Made by a program: the position numbers and the translations under genes. Positions 12,645 to 57,828 of a DNA stretch of 64,000 nucleotides are shown piece by piece. The stretch lies in sequence record MT708547.1. One strand, given 5' to 3'. Position 1 is the stretch's first letter, and every line of letters starts with the position of its first letter. The notes below the pieces were generated by a model, which worked only from the letters and a program-made list of their open reading frames with translations, was not told the origin of the DNA and made no database searches.

Positions 12645-13469
12645 ATGAAAGTAACAGGAAAGGGAAATCAGAAGGATGACCTATTTCATATAGATAAGTT
12701 TTTAAATACTGGTAAATTTTTACCAGGAACAATATTTTCTCGTTCAACTACTAGACAAAAGAACAATAAAGGTGTAATATCATATCCATATTGGAATTAT
12801 AAATGCCCCAAATGTTCACATGATGAATTTGTTGAACATGGTTTATGTTCTGGTGTATTCGAAGGTGAATGTCAAAAACTAAAATTAGGAAAACGTAATT
12901 GTAGATGTGCTCCGACATATAGGTGGACACAAGAACAACGAGAATATCAAATACAAAAAGAAATCGATGAACGTGGTCTAGAAAATTATTTTATTGGATG
13001 GGTTGATCCTGAAGGATATAAAAATAATGGAAGTAAAATTATAATTGGATGTATAAATTCAGATGATGATGGTACCCAACATAAAAGTTATACTATAGCA
13101 ATAAATGATTTTCTCCATGGACATAAAGGTTGTGCTAAATGTGCCGGTCAAACACAAAAACATGCATATATAAATGTTGTATATAATGAAAATAAACCAG
13201 TAGCTATAAAATTTGGAATTGCAAATGCACCACACATAAGGATTGAATTTCAAAATAGTAAAAATTTATATAAGATGGTTCAAACGCACATTTACAAATT
13301 TTTCAGTACTGAACAATGTAAAGATGCTGAACGATATTGTAAATCAATTTATAAAAATGTTTTAACAAAAGAACAACTATTTGATGGTTATACTGAAACC
13401 ACACTATTGGAAAATATAGAAAATATTATTCAAATCTATGAAAAATATGGTGGAATCAGAACAAAATAA
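12645..13469 (+). CDS. Zn-finger protein, putative free-standing homing endonuclease (C-terminal GIY-YIG/T5orf172-like)
   Basis: CPKC, CRC, CAKC motifs and AIKFGIA...R segment; very AT-rich. Confidence 0.5.
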   Translation: MKVTGKGNQKDDLFHIDKFLNTGKFLPGTIFSRSTTRQKNNKGVISYPYWNYKCPKCSHDEFVEHGLCSGVFEGECQKLKLGKRNCRCAPTYRWTQEQREYQIQKEIDERGLENYFIGWVDPEGYKNNGSKIIIGCINSDDDGTQHKSYTIAINDFLHGHKGCAKCAGQTQKHAYINVVYNENKPVAIKFGIANAPHIRIEFQNSKNLYKMVQTHIYKFFSTEQCKDAERYCKSIYKNVLTKEQLFDGYTETTLLENIENIIQIYEKYGGIRTK

Positions 13470-17110: not shown

Positions 17111-17749
17111 TTATTCTACTGTGACTTCAACAGTATCAGTTTTGTTTCCATCATTGGTGGTTACAGTTATAGTTGCAGTACCAGTAGCTACATATGAAAC
17201 TAGTCCAGCACTATCTACAGTACAAACACTCTCTGCACTGGAAGACCATGTAACAGATTTATCGGTTGCATCCAATGGTAGTACTGAAATACTCAATTGC
17301 TCAGTACCACCTACAGCACCAGTAAGCGTTTTTGGTGAAACTGTAACGCTTTCTACATGAACGACTGGTGGTTTTACGTTAGTGCGTCTAAAAATAAATC
17401 CACCATTATCCAACTTGACTTTGTTGAGTTGGTAGAGTATACTGAATCCCTCGACACCGGTTTTTGGGTCAGATTCTTTGATACAAAAGGTATTTACTGC
17501 TAGTGAATCAGCAATATCTTCGTCAGCATCGGAATATTTTAGTGCTACCAGATTTGAATCGCGGTGAACTAGTCTAATAAATGTATAAACAGTTCCATCT
17601 GTGGAAATCAAATCATACACATCAAAAGTTCTTTGTTTGTATACAAATAGGTCGCCAACATGAACTGTACCATTAACATTTGCCGCAGTGACTTTCAATC
17701 CATCAACAACAAACGGATAATGGTTTTGTTTTGCGATAACACGTGCCAT
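17111..17749 (-). CDS. Virion protein with C-terminal Ig-like (Big_2) domain
   Basis: VESVTVSPKTL...DATDKSVTWSSS...VDSAGLV...GTATITVTT pattern; SD AGGGAG. Confidence 0.8.
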   Translation of the reverse strand: MARVIAKQNHYPFVVDGLKVTAANVNGTVHVGDLFVYKQRTFDVYDLISTDGTVYTFIRLVHRDSNLVALKYSDADEDIADSLAVNTFCIKESDPKTGVEGFSILYQLNKVKLDNGGFIFRRTNVKPPVVHVESVTVSPKTLTGAVGGTEQLSISVLPLDATDKSVTWSSSAESVCTVDSAGLVSYVATGTATITVTTNDGNKTDTVEVTVE

Positions 17750-17848
17750 TATTTTCTCCCTTTTATAAAAACTTGTAAACGTTATTAAATTTATGTTTAT
17801 TATAAAATTTTATATAACCTTACTATTATTTACCAATTTAGAGGAAAT

Positions 17849-18445
17849 ATGTTTATTGTACTAAAAGAATTTTTATATAATACATTAATTGCTTTTTCAC
17901 TTATTTTCCCATCACATGATATTCAACAGAATGTAACTGTAAACGATAGTAACGTATTAATTTTTAATACGAAAATAAACGACGAATCAGTACAAAGAGC
18001 GGAAACATTATATAAGAAATATAAGTACAAAACCATTTCTATTACCTCACCGGGAGGTGATGTGAATTCTAGTTTCGAATTAGCAGTCTTTGCTTCTGAC
18101 CATAATATTAAAGTTCATGTACCACAGTACTGTGCAAGTGCATGTACAGTTATATTTTTTGCTGCTGATAAACAAAACAGAGTTATGGATAAAGATGCTA
18201 TTATTGCTATTCATAATGTTTCGGTTGTGGCTAATAATGATATTTCTGGTAATGAAACCATATCTATCAATACTGCCATGGATTTAATGAAAGATACATC
18301 AGAAATTGTAGCAGCTATGTATAGTTTATATGCATATGTTGGTATTCCAGGTGAAATCCTGATGAGAACAAGCACTATGCACGGAGCTGATTCTTATCAA
18401 ATAACAAAAAAACAACTCCAAATGTGGGGCATTTTAGAAAAATAA
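17849..18445 (+). CDS. Membrane-anchored ClpP/crotonase-fold protease-like protein
   Basis: N-terminal hydrophobic anchor; ITSPGG, CASAC, IAIH motifs. Confidence 0.6.
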   Translation: MFIVLKEFLYNTLIAFSLIFPSHDIQQNVTVNDSNVLIFNTKINDESVQRAETLYKKYKYKTISITSPGGDVNSSFELAVFASDHNIKVHVPQYCASACTVIFFAADKQNRVMDKDAIIAIHNVSVVANNDISGNETISINTAMDLMKDTSEIVAAMYSLYAYVGIPGEILMRTSTMHGADSYQITKKQLQMWGILEK

Positions 18446-18484
18446 ATCTGTACAAGAATATCATTTGTGATATAATAATTAAAC

Positions 18485-18532
18485 AGAGAGTGATGTAGCT
18501 CTCTTTTATATAGCTTAGGGAGTACTAAGACA
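18485..18532 (+). promoter_or_regulatory. Twin-hairpin leader of NMNAT-Nudix gene
   Basis: AGAGAGT-gatgta-GCTCTCT, 9 nt, CTTAG-ggagta-CTAAG (SD in loop), 3 nt, ATG. Confidence 0.6.
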
Positions 18533-19597
18533 ATGAAAGAAAAAGTTTATGTATATATTGGACGTTTCCAAATTCCACATATTGGTCATGAAGAAGTCCT
18601 CAAACATGCGATCAAAATTGCAGATCGTGTTATCATTCAGGTCGGTTCAAGTGAACTGGCTCGTGATCCAAAAAACCCATTCACGTTTGAAGAACGTAAG
18701 TCAGTACTAGAAGAAATTACAAAACGTGTAGCTCAAGATGAATGGAATAAAGGTCGAACTGTTAAAATCGATATTATGCCATTACATGATTATGTATATG
18801 ATAATAATGCATGGCTAAAAGAAGTACAGGATAATGTTAAAACATGTACTTCAAGTAATGATATTACTATTACCGGTTGTCGTAAAAATGGTGATACCAG
18901 TACTGAATATCTTAACTATTTTCCTCAATGGAAAAATGACTTCATTAACGAAGTACAAAGTAATGCAAAAGGTACTATTAGTAGTACTGAACTACGCGAA
19001 GCTTTTTTTGTCTCTGGTAAAGTTCCAACTGAATTTGTTTCAAAAGAAACAACAGAATTTCTAGAAAATTTTGTCAGTACTAAACCAGATGTATTCGATA
19101 ATCTTATTAAAGAATATGAATTCATTAATCGTTATATTGAACAAATGAAAGAAGCACTACCTTATGATATTCCTTTTATTTGTGGAGATTCAATTATCGT
19201 AGCTGCTGGGCATGTTTTATTGGGTCGTCGCAGAACTTTTCCGGGGAAAGGTCTTTTGTGCATTCCTGGTGGTTTTTTCCAAGCATGGGAAGACAAAGAC
19301 CAAGTAGATACTGCCATCCGAGAATTGAAAGAAGAAACTAAAATTGATGTACCAGAAAAAGTTCTTCGTGGTAATATTGTAAATGTACAAGATTTTACGG
19401 ATATTAATCGTAGCTTACGTTGGCGTATTCTAACTAAAGCAGTACTTATCCAGTTACCTGATACAACGTTACCAAAAGTTAAAGGAAGTGATGATCTAGA
19501 ATCTGCAAAATGGTATCCACTAAGTGACATAGAAAAATACCGAGATCAGTTCTTTGAGGATCATTATAGTGTACTTCAATCTATGCTAAAACTATAA
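18533..19597 (+). CDS. nadM: Bifunctional NMN adenylyltransferase / Nudix ADP-ribose pyrophosphatase (NadM-Nudix, NatV-like)
   Basis: GRFQIPHIGH (HxGH), NPFTFEER, ISSTELR; Nudix box PGGF...AIRELKEETK; GSDD. Confidence 0.92.
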   Translation: MKEKVYVYIGRFQIPHIGHEEVLKHAIKIADRVIIQVGSSELARDPKNPFTFEERKSVLEEITKRVAQDEWNKGRTVKIDIMPLHDYVYDNNAWLKEVQDNVKTCTSSNDITITGCRKNGDTSTEYLNYFPQWKNDFINEVQSNAKGTISSTELREAFFVSGKVPTEFVSKETTEFLENFVSTKPDVFDNLIKEYEFINRYIEQMKEALPYDIPFICGDSIIVAAGHVLLGRRRTFPGKGLLCIPGGFFQAWEDKDQVDTAIRELKEETKIDVPEKVLRGNIVNVQDFTDINRSLRWRILTKAVLIQLPDTTLPKVKGSDDLESAKWYPLSDIEKYRDQFFEDHYSVLQSMLKL

Positions 19598-19615
19598 AAG
19601 GAGAGCTAGAACTAC

Positions 19616-20623
19616 ATGGATGTAGTTAAAATAAATGTTTATAATATAACTTTTAAATATATTTCTTTAGATGTTTTAAAATATAATAAAGTATCAAATT
19701 ATGAATTTATGGATATCTGGATTAATAAAATAAAAATTATTAACCCAGATATAAAAATATTAGGTGCTAATATTAATTCCATTGAAGAATGGAATGGATT
19801 TAAAACTAAATTATTAATAATTTTCAATGATACATTTTATGATACACAAACTATGAATCACTTATGTTATAGAAAATTTGGTGGAAATATGGTTTTAACA
19901 CAAGATAATTGTTATTATTATCTGAGTAAATCAAATCCAAATATTATTAATTTTATATCTAATATAACAATATTAGATGATAAAACTATAAAATGTGATT
20001 GTATTAAAAATCATTCTTTTACAAGAAATTTAAAAGGATTCAAAGAACCTGATGTACGTAATTGTCCAATTTGTACAAATAATGTATATGTTAAAGAATA
20101 TTTAGAAGAACAAATTTATAAAATAAGAGATCCTGAAATAACAGGAATAAAACTTAGATATGTTCCAGATTTAAATAAAGGAAAAAATACCAAATTGCCA
20201 TTGATTTGTAAATATGGTGATGAATGGGATACAACAACAATTGATAATTTTGTTAATAAAAAATATTGTTGTCCCATATGTTCAGAACGACAACAAAAAT
20301 CAAGACCCGTCTTAGAAATCAAAGAATATCTTTCAAATAATAACATAAAATTTATTATGGAAAAACGTTTTGATGATTGTAAAAATAAACAAGCTTTACC
20401 ATTTGATTTTTATTTACAAGAACAAAATATTTGTATAGAATATGATGGTATTCAACATTTCAAGGCAGTTGAACATTGGGGTGGAGAAGAATATCTTAAA
20501 ATAAGACGAAATAATGATCAAATTAAAAATCAGTACTGTAAAGATAACAATATACGTCTGATTAGAATACGTTATGATGAAGATCCAAAAGAAATTCTTT
20601 TGAGAGAAGGTATCATAACTTAA
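19616..20623 (+). mobile_element. Putative free-standing homing endonuclease (Zn-ribbons plus Vsr/DUF559-like nuclease domain)
   Basis: CPIC repeats; LPFDFYL...IEYDGIQHF...D..KN.YC..NNIRLIRI; extremely AT-rich insertion between nadM and nadV. Confidence 0.7.
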
Positions 20624-20653
20624 AAGAATTATTACACAGAGTAATAATAAATC

Positions 20654-20699
20654 AGAGAACGTAGTAGTTCTCTAACTTAAACTAAGGGAGTCTTAGAAA
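20654..20699 (+). promoter_or_regulatory. Twin-hairpin leader of Nampt gene
   Basis: AGAGAAC-gtagta-GTTCTCT, 8 nt, CTAAG-ggagt-CTTAG (SD in loop), 3 nt, ATG. Confidence 0.6.
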
Positions 20700-22172
20700 A
20701 TGAAAAACGTAAATCCAAATGTAAACTTTATTCTAAATGCCGATTCATATAAAGTTGGTCATCGCAAAATGCTTCGCAAACATGTTGATGGTTATTACAG
20801 TACTATTGTACCTCGTAAAAGCTCTCCACATAGCAACCATGTAGTTGTGGCTGGTTTGCAATACACAATTAATACCTATATCAATATTCAGATTACCAAA
20901 GAAGATGTTGATGAAGCTGAAATTGAAATTCGTGAACAAGGTTCACGTTTTGACCGCACTATTTGGGACAAAATCGTCAATGAGTTTGGTGGTAAAGTTC
21001 CAGTAAAAATTAGTGCTATTAAAGAAGGTACAGTTGTTCCAGTTCAATCAGTAGTTTGTGTTGTTGAAGCTAAAGATGAGTTTGCATTTTTGGCTAGTTA
21101 TATTGAAACTTGTATTCAACGTGGTGTATGGTATAGCAGTACTGTAGCATCTGAATGTCGTGCAATGAAAAAAATTCTTGCTGATGTAATGCAACGTCAT
21201 GCTGGTCATAAGAATGTAGATTATCATTTCCACAACTTTGGAGATCGTAGTGCAACTTGTTTTGAACATGCATATGTAGCTGGTATGGCACATGCAATTA
21301 TGTTCAATGGTTCGGATAGTTTAACTTCAAATCGTTATATTAAAGCTCACTATAATACTACCAAAGCGTATCTGAGTTCAGTTGACGCTACTGAACATAG
21401 TGTTATGTGTAGTAATAGTGATGCTGAACATCGCAATGATTATGGTGCAGCAGTAATGGCGGTAGATCATTGGGAAGAACAAGTTACAATGTGGGAAGAA
21501 GATGGATTAGGTGTACCAGTAACTTCATGTGTTATTGATACTTATAATGATTATCGCTTTGTCCGTGACTTTATCGGTACTAAATTAAAAGACCGTATTG
21601 TTGAAATTGGAAAACGAGGTGGTCGCTTTGTTCTTCGTCCTGATTCACGAATTCCCAAAGAAATTTGTATTGATGTAATCGAAATTCTAATGGAAAAGTT
21701 TGGTTATACTATTAACGAACATGGTTACAAAGTACTACCACCATATATTGGAGTAATTCAAGGTGATGGTGTTAATTTCGATAGTATTCATGAAATTCTA
21801 GATATTCTTGATGAAAAGAAATTATCCCTTGAAAACATTGTATTTGGTTGTGGTACCAAATTGGTTAACCCTGAACGTGGTCGTGATCTTTATAGTTGGT
21901 CAATGAAAGGTACTGCACAACATGTCGAAGATGAACGTGAATGGCAAGACCTATTCAAAGATCCAGCAGGTGAACCAGGCAAACGTTCACATAAAGGGCG
22001 TGTAGTAACCTGGAAATGTAAAGTATCTGGTAAGATTTTTGTTGATCGTGATGATCTTGATAAAGTTAATCATTTCATTGAAAATCTACTTGTACCAATG
22101 TATGACTGCGGTAAAATTATGAATTTCAGTACTTTTGATGAAGTTCGTGAGCGTGCTAACGTAGGTATCTAA
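20700..22172 (+). CDS. nadV: Nicotinamide phosphoribosyltransferase (Nampt/NadV)
   Basis: ADSYK, FHNFGDR, ATEHSV, VIDTY, LRPDS, IQGDG, FGCG, KDP motifs. Confidence 0.9.
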   Translation: MKNVNPNVNFILNADSYKVGHRKMLRKHVDGYYSTIVPRKSSPHSNHVVVAGLQYTINTYINIQITKEDVDEAEIEIREQGSRFDRTIWDKIVNEFGGKVPVKISAIKEGTVVPVQSVVCVVEAKDEFAFLASYIETCIQRGVWYSSTVASECRAMKKILADVMQRHAGHKNVDYHFHNFGDRSATCFEHAYVAGMAHAIMFNGSDSLTSNRYIKAHYNTTKAYLSSVDATEHSVMCSNSDAEHRNDYGAAVMAVDHWEEQVTMWEEDGLGVPVTSCVIDTYNDYRFVRDFIGTKLKDRIVEIGKRGGRFVLRPDSRIPKEICIDVIEILMEKFGYTINEHGYKVLPPYIGVIQGDGVNFDSIHEILDILDEKKLSLENIVFGCGTKLVNPERGRDLYSWSMKGTAQHVEDEREWQDLFKDPAGEPGKRSHKGRVVTWKCKVSGKIFVDRDDLDKVNHFIENLLVPMYDCGKIMNFSTFDEVRERANVGI

Positions 22173-22180
22173 TATATTTT

Positions 22181-22210
22181 GGAGAGTCATTATGGCTCTC
22201 CATTCTTTTT
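22181..22210 (+). terminator. Intrinsic terminator after nadV
   Basis: GGAGAGTCA-tta-TGGCTCTCC followed by T-run. Confidence 0.65.
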
Positions 22211-22418
22211 AATTAAAGTAATAAAGGTATATAATGTGTTTATTGGTTTTAAAATAGTTATTGTCTTCTTTATATGGTTTATTACATATCAAATAATTGA
22301 AGAAATCAGCACTAAATTTTCCTCAGATAATTTCTTAGTAGACGTTTGTTTATTATCCATTGCAATACTTGGTTTTTTGATCATACCAGTTATATTTTCA
22401 TATTTTATATGAAAAATG

Positions 22419-24736: not shown

Positions 24737-24783
24737 ATGAGAACAACATAATATTCTCCCCCAACTAAGATAAGGAATATCTT

Positions 24784-26223
24784 ATGAAAAAATATACTAT
24801 TGACACTAACGTAGTACTTTCCGATCCAAATGCAATCACTGCGTTTGATGGTACATCTGTTATTCTTCCATTTAAAGTACTAGAAGAACTAGATTCTATT
24901 AAAAGTCGTAATGTTGACGTATCTCGTGATGCACGTTTCGCAATCCGAAATATTGATGCAATTCTAGCTGATGCAACTTATGAAGAGATTAGAAATACTG
25001 GTGTTGATATTTCAAAAGTACATACGAATATGAGTGCTTCCAGTAAATTATTTGTAATTACCGATGAAGAAGCAGAAGCTTTAATTCGTACACAAGATAA
25101 AGAAGAAAAATTAGTCACTCTTCTAAAAAGTACAGTTCCTGATGATAAAATCATTTTAGTAGCACTAGCAACTGATTCAGTACTAGTTACAAAAGATATC
25201 AATATGCGTCTAAAAGCACTATCTTATGGTGTTGAGGTTCAAGATTATCGTCATGATGTAGTACTAGAAGATAGTGATCTTATTCATGTCGGTCAACATC
25301 ATCTTGACATTGATTTTTGGGAAATGTTTAAAGATATTCCTGATGCAGAAATTAAATCCAATCAAATTGGTAGAAAATTGTATCACTATATCAGTACTGA
25401 ACTATTAAAAGATTCGTTACCAACAAATATGTATATTGGTGATTATTTGTATGATAATTCTGATGTATTGTTTGTATATGATGGTATTGTTGAACTTGAT
25501 GATTCAGAAGGTAATGCAATTGAAGGTGAGTTTTTTGTATTTCAAGATGTAGGACAATCGGTTGCTTTACGTGCCAAAGTTTGGGATATTAAATCAAAAA
25601 ATATCCAACAATCATTAGCAATTAATAGTATTCTCGATCCTGACGTACATCTTACTGTACTTCTTGGTTCTGCTGGTACTGGTAAAACACTAATTACAAT
25701 TGCAAGTGCACTTGAATTAGTACTAGAGAAGAAAAAATATTCTCGTATTATTTTCTCAAAAACTCAAGATTCACAGTTTGAAGATATTGGTTTCCTACCA
25801 GGATCAGAAAGTGAAAAAGTAATTCCTTTCTGTGGTGCAGCAATTGATGCATTAGAGTTTTTACATCGTGATGACCGTGATCCACAAGGTAGTATTGAAG
25901 AAATTATGAAACGTAATGTTATTCAATTTAAAGCATTGAACTTCGTTCGTGGTCGTAGTTTCACTGATACAATTCTTGTTATCGACGAATTCCAAAATAT
26001 TTCACCTGCACAAGCGAAGACAATCTTGACACGTGCTGGACAAAACTGTAAAGTAATCATTATGGGAAACCTATCACAAATTGATAATAAATTTATTAGT
26101 GCAGTGAATAGTGGTTTAACCTATGTTACTGAAAAATTTAAAGATTGGTCCGGTTGTCGTATCATCGAGTTAGAAGGTGTTGTGCGTTCACCATTAGCCG
26201 AATTTGCTGAGAAAAATATGTAA
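24784..26223 (+). CDS. phoH: PIN-domain PhoH-family ATPase
   Basis: IDTNV, EELD, DDKII, TKDINMR (PIN); GSAGTGKT, RGRS, IDEFQN, GNLSQID, RSPLAE (PhoH). Confidence 0.92.
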   Translation: MKKYTIDTNVVLSDPNAITAFDGTSVILPFKVLEELDSIKSRNVDVSRDARFAIRNIDAILADATYEEIRNTGVDISKVHTNMSASSKLFVITDEEAEALIRTQDKEEKLVTLLKSTVPDDKIILVALATDSVLVTKDINMRLKALSYGVEVQDYRHDVVLEDSDLIHVGQHHLDIDFWEMFKDIPDAEIKSNQIGRKLYHYISTELLKDSLPTNMYIGDYLYDNSDVLFVYDGIVELDDSEGNAIEGEFFVFQDVGQSVALRAKVWDIKSKNIQQSLAINSILDPDVHLTVLLGSAGTGKTLITIASALELVLEKKKYSRIIFSKTQDSQFEDIGFLPGSESEKVIPFCGAAIDALEFLHRDDRDPQGSIEEIMKRNVIQFKALNFVRGRSFTDTILVIDEFQNISPAQAKTILTRAGQNCKVIIMGNLSQIDNKFISAVNSGLTYVTEKFKDWSGCRIIELEGVVRSPLAEFAEKNM

Positions 26224-55153: not shown

Positions 55154-55182
55154 AATAAAATCTTTATAAAGAGGTTTATTAA

Positions 55183-57828
55183 ATGTCTTTAATTCAACTT
55201 TCACCTAGTAATGGTGATTCATTATTAATAAATTCTGGTTCTTTTAGTACTGGAAAAATTATACGAACTAGAAATGAACTGGTATTTTACACCGATCAAT
55301 ATGGTAACAGCACCGGCTATCGCTGGTTAGGTAATTTACCTCATGTGATTAATGGTAATTCACCACAAACCGATGGTGGTATTTCAAGTACATCATGGGA
55401 ATCTTATATTACTGAAAATTTATATGATAAATTAAAATCAGAAAATATCACATTATCAGGTACAGCACATTTACCAACTGTTGAAGTTGCATATGGATTA
55501 CCAAAAGGTTCATTGAAAGTTTGGACTCCAGGTTCTACCAGTTCATCTTCTCAGTACTGGTTATATTCAGATGGAACTGTGTGGGGTGGTGTTGGGGTTT
55601 TGGGATCAGAACCAGATGTTCCATTCACACAATTACATTTACAACGAGATATTATAAAATATAATTACACAATTCCGTCTAATGGTACCACAACTATTTC
55701 TATACCCTATACATTCAGTTCAATTGAAGTTTATGTTAATGGTGTATTACAAGATTCAAATTCCTATTCGGTATCAGGTCAGTATATATTTTTTTCTTCT
55801 GAATTATTGCAGGGTGATATCATTCAAACATTTTTAAATGATGTTCCTATCAGTTCAGTCGATTATGCATTAAAAAGTGATTTATCTAACTATGCTACAA
55901 AAGATAATTTAATGAATTTTGAACAAGATATCAGTTCTAATTATGGTCTTACAATGATTGGACAATGTTCTGACATAAATGATATGAAATCGGTAGAGCC
56001 TATGATAAGTGGGCAACAAGTATATTTAATATCTCGTGTTAGTGGGTGGGAAGCAACATCTTCTGGTATGCCATGGGGCGGTGGTAAATTTCGTTATATT
56101 TCAAACCTCCCTGAAAATTTAAGAATTGATGATGGTGGTAGCATTATTAAAACCAATAATGGTAAATTTTGGGTAAGAGATGAATTATTCACAGGGCAGG
56201 GGGAAATACGGGTTGAATGGTATCTTGAAAACGCCCCATCATTTTTAAATGATGAAAGTGATGCATTACAAACCGCAGCTAATACTGCCCTGCTATGGTC
56301 TAAATATTCAGGATATAATAAAACAATACGCTTAATTATGCCACCAATTTTAACTATTAGTAAAACTATTAATATATATACTCGTGGTGTTCGTATTGAT
56401 GGTAATCATGGATATTGTAAAGTATTAAATACCGGAACTTATACTTTATATACTGATTTAAGTAGTAATGTAAATATAAAAAATACTCCTGATAATAATA
56501 TACCACCACGAGTAGTAATAAACATAACTCATGGTTCCGACGGCGGTGTATCTAACCCAGCATATTCGGATCAAGAAATTATAAAAGATTGGAATCTAGT
56601 ATTAGGAAATGTTGGAGATGATTTTAATCCAATTAATAAAACCGACAATGGAATAGTTGCATTTTGTCATTGGGGTACCAGTACTGTTGCCGCTGCCCAG
56701 TTTTCTATAAAAAATGTATCAGTGCAAGGGTTTGGTGTAGGATATATCAACGGTGATAATACTTGGGGTGGTAATTTTTATGAATGTAAATTCGTTGGAT
56801 GTTGGATTCCACTATGGTTAATCAACGGAGCCGATAATACCGAGCGTTACACTCTTTTTGGTTGCGTTATGCAGAACGGATACCGATGTGTATATTCTCC
56901 TTGGGGTGGGGATTTTAACATCGTTAAAGGCTCATATGTCTGGAATACTGGCCCGTATTTTGAGTTCCCGACTGCGAGTAATATGATAGAAATAAATCCA
57001 TCTAGAATTGAAATGGTTAATACATCAAACCCACTTCTTATAGTTGGAACCGCTATCGAAACCGGGGCAACATCCCAAACATTCCCGCTGGTAAAATTGC
57101 ATGGCTCAATGATCTTATTGGACGCGTCAACAGTTCAGCCTGCTAATTATTTATTCAGTGTGAGTAAATATTCCAAGTTAATCGTAGAGGACAATACTTG
57201 GTCACATAAAAATATGACCAATAACGCGAATTTGAAGCTCTTGAATCCTTCTGACACTGGCGGGAAAGTGATTTTCAGGAACAACACCTGCCGCGTTGGT
57301 ATATTCTCAGAAATGGCCCGTGACAGTAGATTGATGACAAGCAGGACGCCAGCAGGACGTATCAATGATATTACAATCGGCGGAGTTAATGCTGCAAAGG
57401 CGTCATACAGTGTAAATGGAGCAGCTCTGACTTTTACAGTAAACGAGACATCAACCAGCGGAACATTGACGCTGTTGTTGAGAGTCCCTGTGGACGTAGA
57501 TATGACAGACTGGGACAGCCTGTCATGGAAAGCAGTGTTCGCCAACTTAAACCTAACTGGAACGTGGACTATTAACTGCTTCGCGTCCGTAGCAGGCTCA
57601 TCATATCTGAACAACCGTATAGATCTCGGTTCAGTTACATTGAACTCGGTAACTGATATCAGTGATGTTTGCAGCAATAACGCTTACGGATTCAAGAAAA
57701 TACTGAAACGTGCAGATGGCGGGTGGGACCGCGTGCCAACAGAGGTATATTTTTATATTTCTGGTGGAAATTCCCAAACTGCTGGCGATACATTTACAAT
57801 CACTAGTCTTGGGCTGCTTGGGTACTAA
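55183..57828 (+). CDS. Tail spike / depolymerase (MSL anchor, 1 docking repeat)
   Basis: Shared N-terminus; ESDALQTAAN pectin-lyase-like entry; beta-helix. Confidence 0.85.
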   Translation: MSLIQLSPSNGDSLLINSGSFSTGKIIRTRNELVFYTDQYGNSTGYRWLGNLPHVINGNSPQTDGGISSTSWESYITENLYDKLKSENITLSGTAHLPTVEVAYGLPKGSLKVWTPGSTSSSSQYWLYSDGTVWGGVGVLGSEPDVPFTQLHLQRDIIKYNYTIPSNGTTTISIPYTFSSIEVYVNGVLQDSNSYSVSGQYIFFSSELLQGDIIQTFLNDVPISSVDYALKSDLSNYATKDNLMNFEQDISSNYGLTMIGQCSDINDMKSVEPMISGQQVYLISRVSGWEATSSGMPWGGGKFRYISNLPENLRIDDGGSIIKTNNGKFWVRDELFTGQGEIRVEWYLENAPSFLNDESDALQTAANTALLWSKYSGYNKTIRLIMPPILTISKTINIYTRGVRIDGNHGYCKVLNTGTYTLYTDLSSNVNIKNTPDNNIPPRVVINITHGSDGGVSNPAYSDQEIIKDWNLVLGNVGDDFNPINKTDNGIVAFCHWGTSTVAAAQFSIKNVSVQGFGVGYINGDNTWGGNFYECKFVGCWIPLWLINGADNTERYTLFGCVMQNGYRCVYSPWGGDFNIVKGSYVWNTGPYFEFPTASNMIEINPSRIEMVNTSNPLLIVGTAIETGATSQTFPLVKLHGSMILLDASTVQPANYLFSVSKYSKLIVEDNTWSHKNMTNNANLKLLNPSDTGGKVIFRNNTCRVGIFSEMARDSRLMTSRTPAGRINDITIGGVNAAKASYSVNGAALTFTVNETSTSGTLTLLLRVPVDVDMTDWDSLSWKAVFANLNLTGTWTINCFASVAGSSYLNNRIDLGSVTLNSVTDISDVCSNNAYGFKKILKRADGGWDRVPTEVYFYISGGNSQTAGDTFTITSLGLLGY

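Follow-up and report, generated by a model that had tools for sequence, protein, structure and literature searches.

Klebsiella phage Muenster carries two genes for the synthesis of nicotinamide adenine dinucleotide (NAD), nadM and nadV, and the leaders of both repeat one layout of two small hairpins, the second of which displays the ribosome-binding site in its loop. What is this layout, and what might it do for the two genes? The window analysed here, 64,000 nucleotides (nt) of sequence record MT708547.1, corresponds to positions 62001-126000 of the 346,937-bp, 32% GC genome of Muenster, a RaK2-like jumbo phage of the genus Alcyoneusvirus; coordinates below are window positions and features lie on the plus strand. 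The gene nadM (18533-19597) encodes a bifunctional nicotinamide mononucleotide (NMN) adenylyltransferase and Nudix hydrolase of 354 amino acids (aa), as annotated in MT708547.1 and as seen in its Pfam domains CTP_transf_like and NUDIX. The gene nadV (20700-22172) encodes a nicotinamide phosphoribosyltransferase of 490 aa, recognized from Pfam domains NAMPT_N and NAPRTase and from tblastn relatives. Judged by these domains, Muenster would encode both Nampt and Nmnat, the enzymes of phage NAD+ reconstitution pathway 2 (NARP2; 10.1101/2024.02.11.579819). Phages with this pathway rebuild NAD+ and so escape NAD-depleting defences, for example Thoeris and DSR2 (10.1101/2024.02.11.579819).

Upstream of nadM, hairpin 1 (HP1, 18485-18504) reads AGAGAGT/gatgta/GCTCTCT, a 7-bp stem with a closing U.G pair and the hexaloop GAUGUA, at -8.6 kcal/mol. 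An unpaired, A/U-rich linker of 9 nt (18505-18513) leads to hairpin 2 (HP2, 18514-18529), whose 5-bp stem CUUAG/CUAAG carries the loop GGAGUA at -3.5 kcal/mol. The Shine-Dalgarno (SD) sequence GGAG (18519-18522) lies inside this loop, and 3 nt separate the hairpin from the ATG at 18533. The nadV leader has HP1 at 20654-20673 (AGAGAAC/gtagta/GTTCTCT, a 7-bp stem with the hexaloop GUAGUA, -8.5 kcal/mol), a linker of 8 nt, and HP2 at 20682-20696 (5-bp stem CUAAG/CUUAG, pentaloop GGAGU, -2.2 kcal/mol), with the SD at 20687-20690 again in the loop and again 3 nt to the ATG, at 20700. RNAfold predicts both hairpins in both leaders (z = -2.5 and -1.95). HP1 lies some 33-38 nt upstream of the AUG, the distance from its loop (closing C included) to the AUG being 33-36 nt in Muenster and in the related phage CBB, and the 3' arm of HP2 occupies the spacing between SD and AUG. 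The two leaders are clearly paralogous in sequence. Where their stems differ, pairing is kept: one HP1 pair goes from G-C to A-U, another from U.G to C-G, and the central HP2 pair from U-A to A-U. A preliminary description of this locus, made from the letters alone, had given these hairpin sequences, spacers and distances to the ATG, all of which prove exact, and had noted compensatory stem changes between the two leaders, which the three substitutions bear out.

Within Alcyoneusvirus the leaders are almost invariant, the sole change being A-U to G.U in the nadM HP1 of RCIP0023. In phiKp_21 both leaders are 100% identical to those of Muenster up to the ATG, while its NadV is 60.6% identical and diverges right after the ATG (stretch L006, 447-546 and 1575-1685); as far as sequence comparison can tell, the leader would there either mark a mosaic boundary or be constrained far more tightly than the gene. 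In four metagenomic relatives the coding regions differ at many sites, and none of the differences listed falls in either leader. The wider RaK2-like set compared consists of CBB, GAP32, XbC2, Kaldavass, BF, SNUABM_19, Yen9-04, Munch, Kae01, EJP2, Hallingskeid and XaC1, with NadV 51-56% identical. Across this set the layout is kept at both genes. The HP1 stems are wholly different between phages (CAAGGU, GAAAGC, GCCGAU, CCAAC and AAGAAC are examples), and the HP1 loop is constant, GNNGUA, except that EJP2 and Hallingskeid have GNGRA. HP2 hardly varies within the clade (CUAAG-GGAGU-CUUAG), and the linker, 8-20 nt long in the relatives, is variable in sequence and poor in G. HP1 stems begin with AGAGA at both genes in Alcyoneusvirus; in other RaK2-like genera they have CAA(A/G)G(C/U) at nadM and GAAAGC at nadV. 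The two HP1s of one genome appear to change together, a pattern that suggests gene conversion between the leaders.

The architecture extends far beyond these phages. It is kept before nadM at loci whose NadM is 33-40% identical, and also before nadV where that gene follows directly or after a gap. We found the motif in Roseobacter phage DSS3P8 (both genes), Aeromonas phage Aeh1 (nadM) and Ralstonia phage RSP15 (both genes), as well as before nadM in a few bacteria and metagenome-assembled genomes (MAGs), namely a Leptospiraceae contig, Jannaschia pohangensis and a cyanobacterial MAG. The Moraxella and Polaromonas nadM genes examined are without it, and it was not found at two homologues with an Nmnat domain only (L090 and L092, matching just NadM residues 4-193). 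Motif-bearing phages have been isolated on Ruegeria, Ralstonia, Aeromonas, Vibrio and Klebsiella or other enterobacteria, genera that we take to represent the Alpha-, Beta- and Gammaproteobacteria. In the largest distant class of HP1, G-AUAGA-C (GAUAGAC) is invariant in 11 leaders with unrelated stems, and the distance from loop (closing C included) to AUG is 30-38 nt; further loop classes are AGAGA, AGGGA, GGGGU and, in Jannaschia, GAGGU. The class is common to both leaders of one genome and differs between lineages. HP2 is elsewhere a GGAGN pentaloop 0-4 nt from the AUG, with GGAG invariant in 33 aligned leaders, on stems such as UCUG/CAGA, ACGA/UCGU, AUAG/CUAU, CGAG/CUCG, UCAC/GUGA, GCAAA/UUUGC and GAUAA/UUAUC, among others. 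An HP2 of at least 4 bp is lacking in 12 of the 48 leaders surveyed, ten having none and two a stem of only 3 bp. The chromosomal nadM leader of Jannaschia pohangensis (stretch L107, approximately 1715-1770) shows the loop GAGGU in both hairpins, on stems CGCGG/CCGCG and TTGCG/CGCAA; its sequence hints that HP1 started out as a second hairpin presenting an SD, or imitates one.

Do these helices covary more than chance would allow? Alignments made with MAFFT or with a covariance model shift some leaders by one column (the HP2 of Muenster nadM and the HP1s with 5-nt loops), and because of these shifts the model-based alignment understates pairing and shows no covariation for HP2. HP2 and the AUAGA-class HP1 were therefore scored on gapless alignments anchored on the loop only, the HP2 alignment comprising 33 distinct leaders chosen for having GGAG. 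For the RaK2-like HP1, scored on the model-based alignment, all seven pairs are changed on both sides, and 84% pairing drops to 25-56% when partners are slid. The AUAGA-class HP1 has 86% of cells paired, double changes in seven of eight pairs, and a covariation score of 0.76 against 0.23 in shuffles. For HP2, 90% of cells are paired, as compared with 47% in shuffles and 30-42% with partners slid; five of five pairs are doubly changed, including the outer G-C pairs, which covary too, and the covariation score is 1.05 against 0.21. None of 500 shuffles reaches the observed score in any of the three tests, and slid partners overall are 22-56% paired, versus 84-90% for the structure. Each helix thus shows compensatory changes above controls, as is generally looked for in structured cis-regulatory RNA. 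G.U pairs occur in the sense strand only, and because they are tolerated there the helices must be viewed as forming in the sense RNA. The compensatory changes, together with leaders that are conserved where proteins have diverged, indicate that the helices are under selection.

The element is also dedicated to its two genes. In the entire Muenster genome the sequence patterns of HP1 and HP2 each occur at the two leaders only. In each of five complete jumbo phage genomes of about 350 kb, a covariance model of the twin motif, R1, matched strongly at exactly two places, the leaders of nadM and nadV (31.7-64.9 bits), and no other site scored above 22 bits. A model of the AUAGA-class HP1 alone, R2, scored 21-30 bits at nadM and nadV leaders only, in five further distant genomes or contigs; a plain search for GATAGAC, in which N flanks are ignored, gave counts at control level, and R2 was used instead. 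The next best R2 match, at 17 bits, lies in DSS3P8 just after gp224 (stretch L101, approximately 637-662) and 350 nt from the next annotated gene. We regard this third DSS3P8 match, which is not at a gene start, as unrelated. Among 2.9 million IMG/VR contigs, the exact 15-mer of HP2 with ATG directly behind it turned up 25 times; the gene that follows encodes NadM or NadV in 24 of these cases, one being a NadM just 36% identical to that of Muenster. We hold with high confidence that the twin hairpins are a real, selected RNA motif, formed in the sense RNA and dedicated to two NAD genes. The preliminary description had proposed just such a dedicated RNA-level element common to both NAD-salvage genes, and it stands on conservation and covariation of the structure in orthologous leaders across jumbo phages, on sense-only G.U pairs and on exclusivity; its worry that the motif might prove common before unrelated genes is answered by the R1, R2 and 15-mer searches, which lead to NAD genes.

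The same description had seen the layout at no other gene in the window. That holds for the twin arrangement, present at two places in 346,937 bp, but not for an SD in a hairpin loop as such, which is common in this genome: SD-flanking stems of at least 4 bp occur at 73 of 267 crudely defined Muenster gene starts, where permutations give 50.7 +/- 6.4, and stems of at least 5 bp at 25 of 267, where permutations give 19.5 +/- 4.4. Two instances within the window are the inverted repeats AAGATA-aggaa-TATCTT (24766-24786) around the SD directly before the ATG of a PhoH-like ATPase (start 24784), and ATAAA-gagg-TTTAT (55166-55185) around the SD of an 881-aa open reading frame (ORF; start 55183). 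Outside the window, two early-region genes at approximately 12900-12950 and 17930-17975 of the Muenster genome have a G+C-rich hairpin with an ATAAT loop, on stems GGGAATGA/TCATTCCC and GGGGAG/CTCCCC, 7 nt before a weak SD hairpin. The ATAAT-loop hairpins may represent another type of repeated leader or of terminator.

What would such an element do? HP1 and HP2 may together form a bipartite translational operator on the nadM and nadV mRNAs. A sequence-specific RNA-binding factor would recognise the HP1 loop and clamp the weak HP2, which the 30S subunit could then no longer open for pairing with the SD; the two enzymes would thereby be dosed together and the costly NARP2 pathway limited. Several observations point in this direction. 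Up to seven positions of the HP1 loop are conserved on a stem that varies freely, which argues for sequence-specific recognition rather than mere folding. HP1 is held at about -8.5 kcal/mol, and because HP2, at -2.2 to -3.5 kcal/mol, must compete with a duplex of SD and 16S ribosomal RNA (rRNA) 3' end worth about -8 kcal/mol, the ribosome should win unless HP2 is stabilised. A hairpin that is too weak to block the ribosome alone, and is yet kept by covariation, is typical of an operator held by protein. The same loop classes are found across phages of very different hosts, so the partner should be either universal or travelling with the genes; and since only nadM and nadV are common to all motif loci, autogenous or joint repression is favoured. 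NARP2 consumes phosphoribosyl pyrophosphate (PRPP) and overproduces NAD+, and the KVP40 operon is toxic in E. coli when cloned (10.1101/2024.02.11.579819), a cost and toxicity on overexpression that give dosing a rationale. We put forward the protein-bound translational operator, under autogenous or joint repression, as a tentative reading, with somewhat less than even confidence.

The candidate binder would be a product of the module itself, NadM-Nudix or NadV/Nampt, giving autogenous control that might respond to NAD-pathway metabolites. Carried further, this becomes an enzyme-RNA feedback circuit, in which NadM-Nudix or NadV/Nampt, when free of substrate or product, binds both purine-rich loops of both leaders, so that NAD-pathway metabolites set translation. 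We judge this extended form unlikely. Under it, the genes would pass from phage to phage together with their operator, as a single self-regulating anti-defence module.

The position of the element in its transcript bears on the alternatives. A predicted early sigma-70-type promoter of nadM lies at 18449-18476 (TGTACA, a 16-nt spacer and TATAAT, with TG one base before the -10, making it an extended -10); with 10 of 12 matches plus the TG, it is the best promoter-like site in 17700-22400. Transcription is predicted to start at about 18483, 1-2 nt before HP1, which begins 8 nt after the -10. TGnTATAAT with HP1 8-9 nt later recurs in 11 of 12 distinct RaK2-like nadM leaders, XaC1 being the one without TGnTATAAT. 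The nadM HP1 was flagged as weakly terminator-like (tail TTTATATAG). We rejected HP1 as an intrinsic terminator or attenuator on the ground that the T run is not conserved, being absent after the nadV HP1 and after orthologous HP1s in the RaK2-like leaders compared.

Between the nadM stop and the nadV leader, 19598-20626 is a variable insertion site among relatives. In Muenster it holds a gene annotated as an EDxHD homing endonuclease (19616-20623, 335 aa), which lies outside the leader element and gave no match in a Pfam search; RaK2 has a 1026-nt ORF at the site and KP13-7 a 1425-nt ORF. K64-1, RCIP0023, phiKp_21 and OU509535 lack the endonuclease gene and have nothing between nadM and the nadV leader, and one seawater metagenome run contains both the filled form and an endonuclease-free form that skips 19567-20623. 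A further hairpin, hairpin 0 (20628-20648), precedes HP1 in the nadV leader, with an 8-bp A/U stem ATTATTAC/GTAATAAT, the loop ACAGA and -4.1 kcal/mol; in endonuclease-free relatives it stands 3 nt after the nadM stop codon. CBB-like nadV leaders have at this position a hairpin with covarying stems (TTTGGT/ACCAAA, ATGGC/GCCAT, TTGGCA/TGCCAA) and an ATAA-type loop. Hairpin 0 could be an end-protection or processing signal. Downstream of nadV, an intrinsic-terminator-like hairpin (22180-22202; 10-bp stem, 5 G-C pairs, then the T run TTCTTTTT) is likely the end of the nadM-nadV transcription unit. In CBB, GAP32, BF, Yen9-04, XbC2, Kaldavass and XaC1, a strong terminator-like hairpin stands directly 3' of nadM (stretch L012, approximately 2870-2900, and equivalents), reading GGAGTAC-ttcg-GTACTCC followed by a T run in CBB, GAP32 and BF, and a gene of about 175 aa, with no assigned function, precedes nadV; Muenster has neither that gene nor that terminator.

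A number of observations weigh against a protein-held operator. NadM and NadV show enzyme domains only, with no recognisable RNA-binding domain in Pfam, and the binder is a candidate only. The hairpins do not always travel together: in the nadV leaders of Munch, Kae01, EJP2, Hallingskeid and the metagenomic relative L070, HP1 is kept and another conserved ribosome-binding site, CCAAAGAGGTAATA or CCTAAGAGGTAATA, replaces HP2, so the two can be uncoupled. HP1 is missing in KP27, which has HP2 only, and in the KVP40-like phage V09, which has a weak HP2 only, while Aes508 has neither hairpin. Weak SD-flanking stems are near chance frequency in Muenster. The nadM transcription start is a prediction, and our search for sequencing runs gave metagenome runs only and no infection transcriptome. 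Finally, a stable hairpin at the 5' end combined with a weak SD hairpin is also expected of a constitutive cis-acting cassette.

Such a cassette, the chief rival to the operator and a real possibility, but on balance a doubtful one, would need no regulator: HP1 would be a 5'-terminal or post-processing stem-loop acting against 5'-end-dependent decay and as an insulator, and HP2 would keep the SD pre-organised, protected and easily opened. Stem-loops at the 5' terminus are known to stabilise E. coli mRNAs, as in the ompA 5' untranslated region, and the nadM HP1, stable at -8.6 kcal/mol and predicted to begin no more than about 2 nt from the 5' end, would resemble them, the spacing behind the -10 recurring in the RaK2-like leaders as described above. 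An HP2 easily outcompeted by the anti-SD and a G-poor, unstructured linker fit as well, and a self-contained unit would suit a module that moves between phages. Unlike the ompA stabiliser, however, HP1 has a conserved, gene-specific loop, and before nadV it is internal to the transcript wherever nadM and nadV are arranged as an operon. A purely structural device also leaves unexplained the seven invariant bases GAUAGAC across leaders with unrelated stems, the loop class common to two leaders of one genome, and its own absence from every other early gene of ten genomes or contigs. HP1 as a translational enhancer that pairs through its loop with 16S rRNA was considered and dropped: no Watson-Crick 7-mer site for any loop class is present in E. 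coli rrsH, only scattered sites that tolerate G.U. At the other extreme, the hairpins might have no function and be a duplicated intergenic segment, or a by-product of A-rich and U-rich flanks at strong SDs in AT-rich phages. The clear paralogy of the two Muenster leaders, the near-chance frequency of weak SD-flanking stems and the many HP2 stems that are A-rich 5' and U-rich 3' would agree with this. To such a reading we assign scarcely any probability, for the comparative data already contradict it: stems covary around fixed loops across proteins 30-60% identical, the outer G-C pairs of HP2 covary, the motif is exclusive genome-wide, and the leader is 100% conserved where the coding sequence has diverged.

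Three further mechanisms, each involving a specific ligand, regulator or nuclease, fit only part of the pattern. As a metabolite riboswitch, the twin hairpins would bind NAD+, NMN, ADP-ribose, nicotinamide or PRPP and alter access to the SD. Like the NAD+ riboswitches (nadA and pnuC motifs), the element is a cis RNA located before NAD-synthesis genes, here exclusively so; its geometry is conserved, and its tandem layout is loosely like that of the nadA motif and of the two-domain NAD+-I riboswitch. Conservation is nevertheless confined to terminal loops of 5-6 nt and extends to no bulge, junction or pseudoknot; the linker differs between leaders in both sequence and length, and the two loops, both purine-rich, cannot pair with each other. 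Rfam 15 has no family that matches anywhere in the window at gathering score, and a search of 18400-20750 at E <= 10 returned four weak, chance-level matches, none inside the leaders. We regard a riboswitch as highly improbable. Repression by host CsrA/RsmA, whose dimer would bind GGA in the HP2 loop, is harder still to credit. Classic CsrA targets expose a GGA in a short, SD-overlapping hairpin loop, and this is what the HP2 loops offer, GGAGU and GGAGUA in Muenster and GGAGN in 33 leaders; a few HP1 loops add a GGA, among them those of EJP2 nadV (GCGGA) and Hallingskeid nadM (GUGGA). But GGA is present in every GGAG Shine-Dalgarno, and most leaders lack a second dimer site, their HP1 loops being conserved and without GGA (GAUGUA, GUAGUA, GUUGUA, AUAGA, AGAGA). 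The occurrence of the element in phages of Ruegeria, Ralstonia, Aeromonas, Vibrio and Klebsiella, and in a cyanobacterial MAG, further argues against any one host regulator.

A phage or host RNase might instead cut the exposed GGAG/U loop, in the manner of RegB, or cut beside HP1, shutting off the two genes once the early period is over or separating nadV from nadM. RegB cuts GGAG/U in the translation-initiation regions of early T4 mRNAs, and without S1 it needs the GGA unpaired and the fourth G constrained (PMC3014915). The GGAGU pentaloop suits this requirement, and GGAGU lies at 18519-18523 and 20687-20691, downstream of the sigma-70-type promoter, in what would be early-gene translation-initiation regions; in endonuclease-free relatives, hairpin 0 and HP1 come directly after the nadM stop. 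The strong-site consensus of RegB is GGAGRAYARAA (PMC3014915), and its A-rich 3' part is missing here: the 3' context, GGAGUCUUAG, misfits, the Muenster nadM and nadV leaders reading GGAGUACUAAG and GGAGUCUUAGA. RegB itself (PF10715, REGB_T4) has no match in the 346,937-bp Muenster genome at E <= 1, a result that leaves room for a non-homologous nuclease. Since phages with no relation to T4 and a few bacterial contigs carry the motif too, and the conserved HP1 loop is left unexplained, we consider cleavage improbable. The preliminary description had offered three mechanisms, and they fared unequally. Its translational-repressor site is the best remaining reading, with a putative binder. CsrA as that repressor falls on the mostly GGA-free HP1 loops and the very broad range of phage hosts, the metabolite switch on conservation restricted to terminal loops, a variable linker and the want of an Rfam family, and RNase processing by RegB on the lack of a homologue and the off-consensus 3' context.

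The protein-bound operator has precedents in kind. The coat-protein operators of RNA phages (MS2/R17, PP7) are small, marginal hairpins that include part of the ribosome-binding site and can be opened by the ribosome unless held by protein. HP2 is likewise a weak hairpin over the ribosome-binding site, but those operators are single and include the replicase start codon and a bulged A, whereas the NAD leaders carry the SD in the loop and conserve a further hairpin at a distance. For the autogenous idea, NadR and NrtR offer a precedent in enzyme-derived regulators. Both are NAD-gene regulators that evolved from the two domain families of NadM, NMN adenylyltransferase and Nudix, and both sense NAD-pathway metabolites. 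They act on DNA through an added helix-turn-helix, unlike NadM, in which Pfam finds no such domain, and unlike the present element, which is read as RNA. A parallel in layout is the operator of T4 gene 43, an upstream conserved-loop hairpin plus the ribosome-binding site, bound by the gene's own product (PMC3014915). Both are bipartite elements of early transcripts (predicted as such for nadM), with a hairpin tens of nt before the AUG (here about 35) whose loop is conserved and whose stem differs between related phages (PMC3014915). The two have no sequence relation; in the present case the SD has its own covarying hairpin, two genes have the element, and the binder is putative. A T4 RegA-type operator finds no counterpart, RegA (PF01818) having no match in the Muenster genome at E <= 1.

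We found no description of this leader in Rfam or in the literature searched, which covered NARP2, RNA motifs of nadV, candidate structured RNAs and transcription in RaK2-like phages, nor, in the same sources, any description of how phages control NARP2. The element therefore appears to be a new motif of a familiar kind, the structured mRNA leader or translational operator. At about 50 nt it is compact enough to be a marker for annotating NARP2 genes and possibly a portable part for expression or regulation. Because it is tied to the two NARP2 genes, it offers a concrete and testable handle on control of the pathway. If the binder is one of the two enzymes, phage counter-defence would gain a metabolic enzyme that regulates its own mRNA, and the feedback circuit, if true, would constitute a translational operator of a new class and the first layer of regulation known for phage NAD reconstitution.

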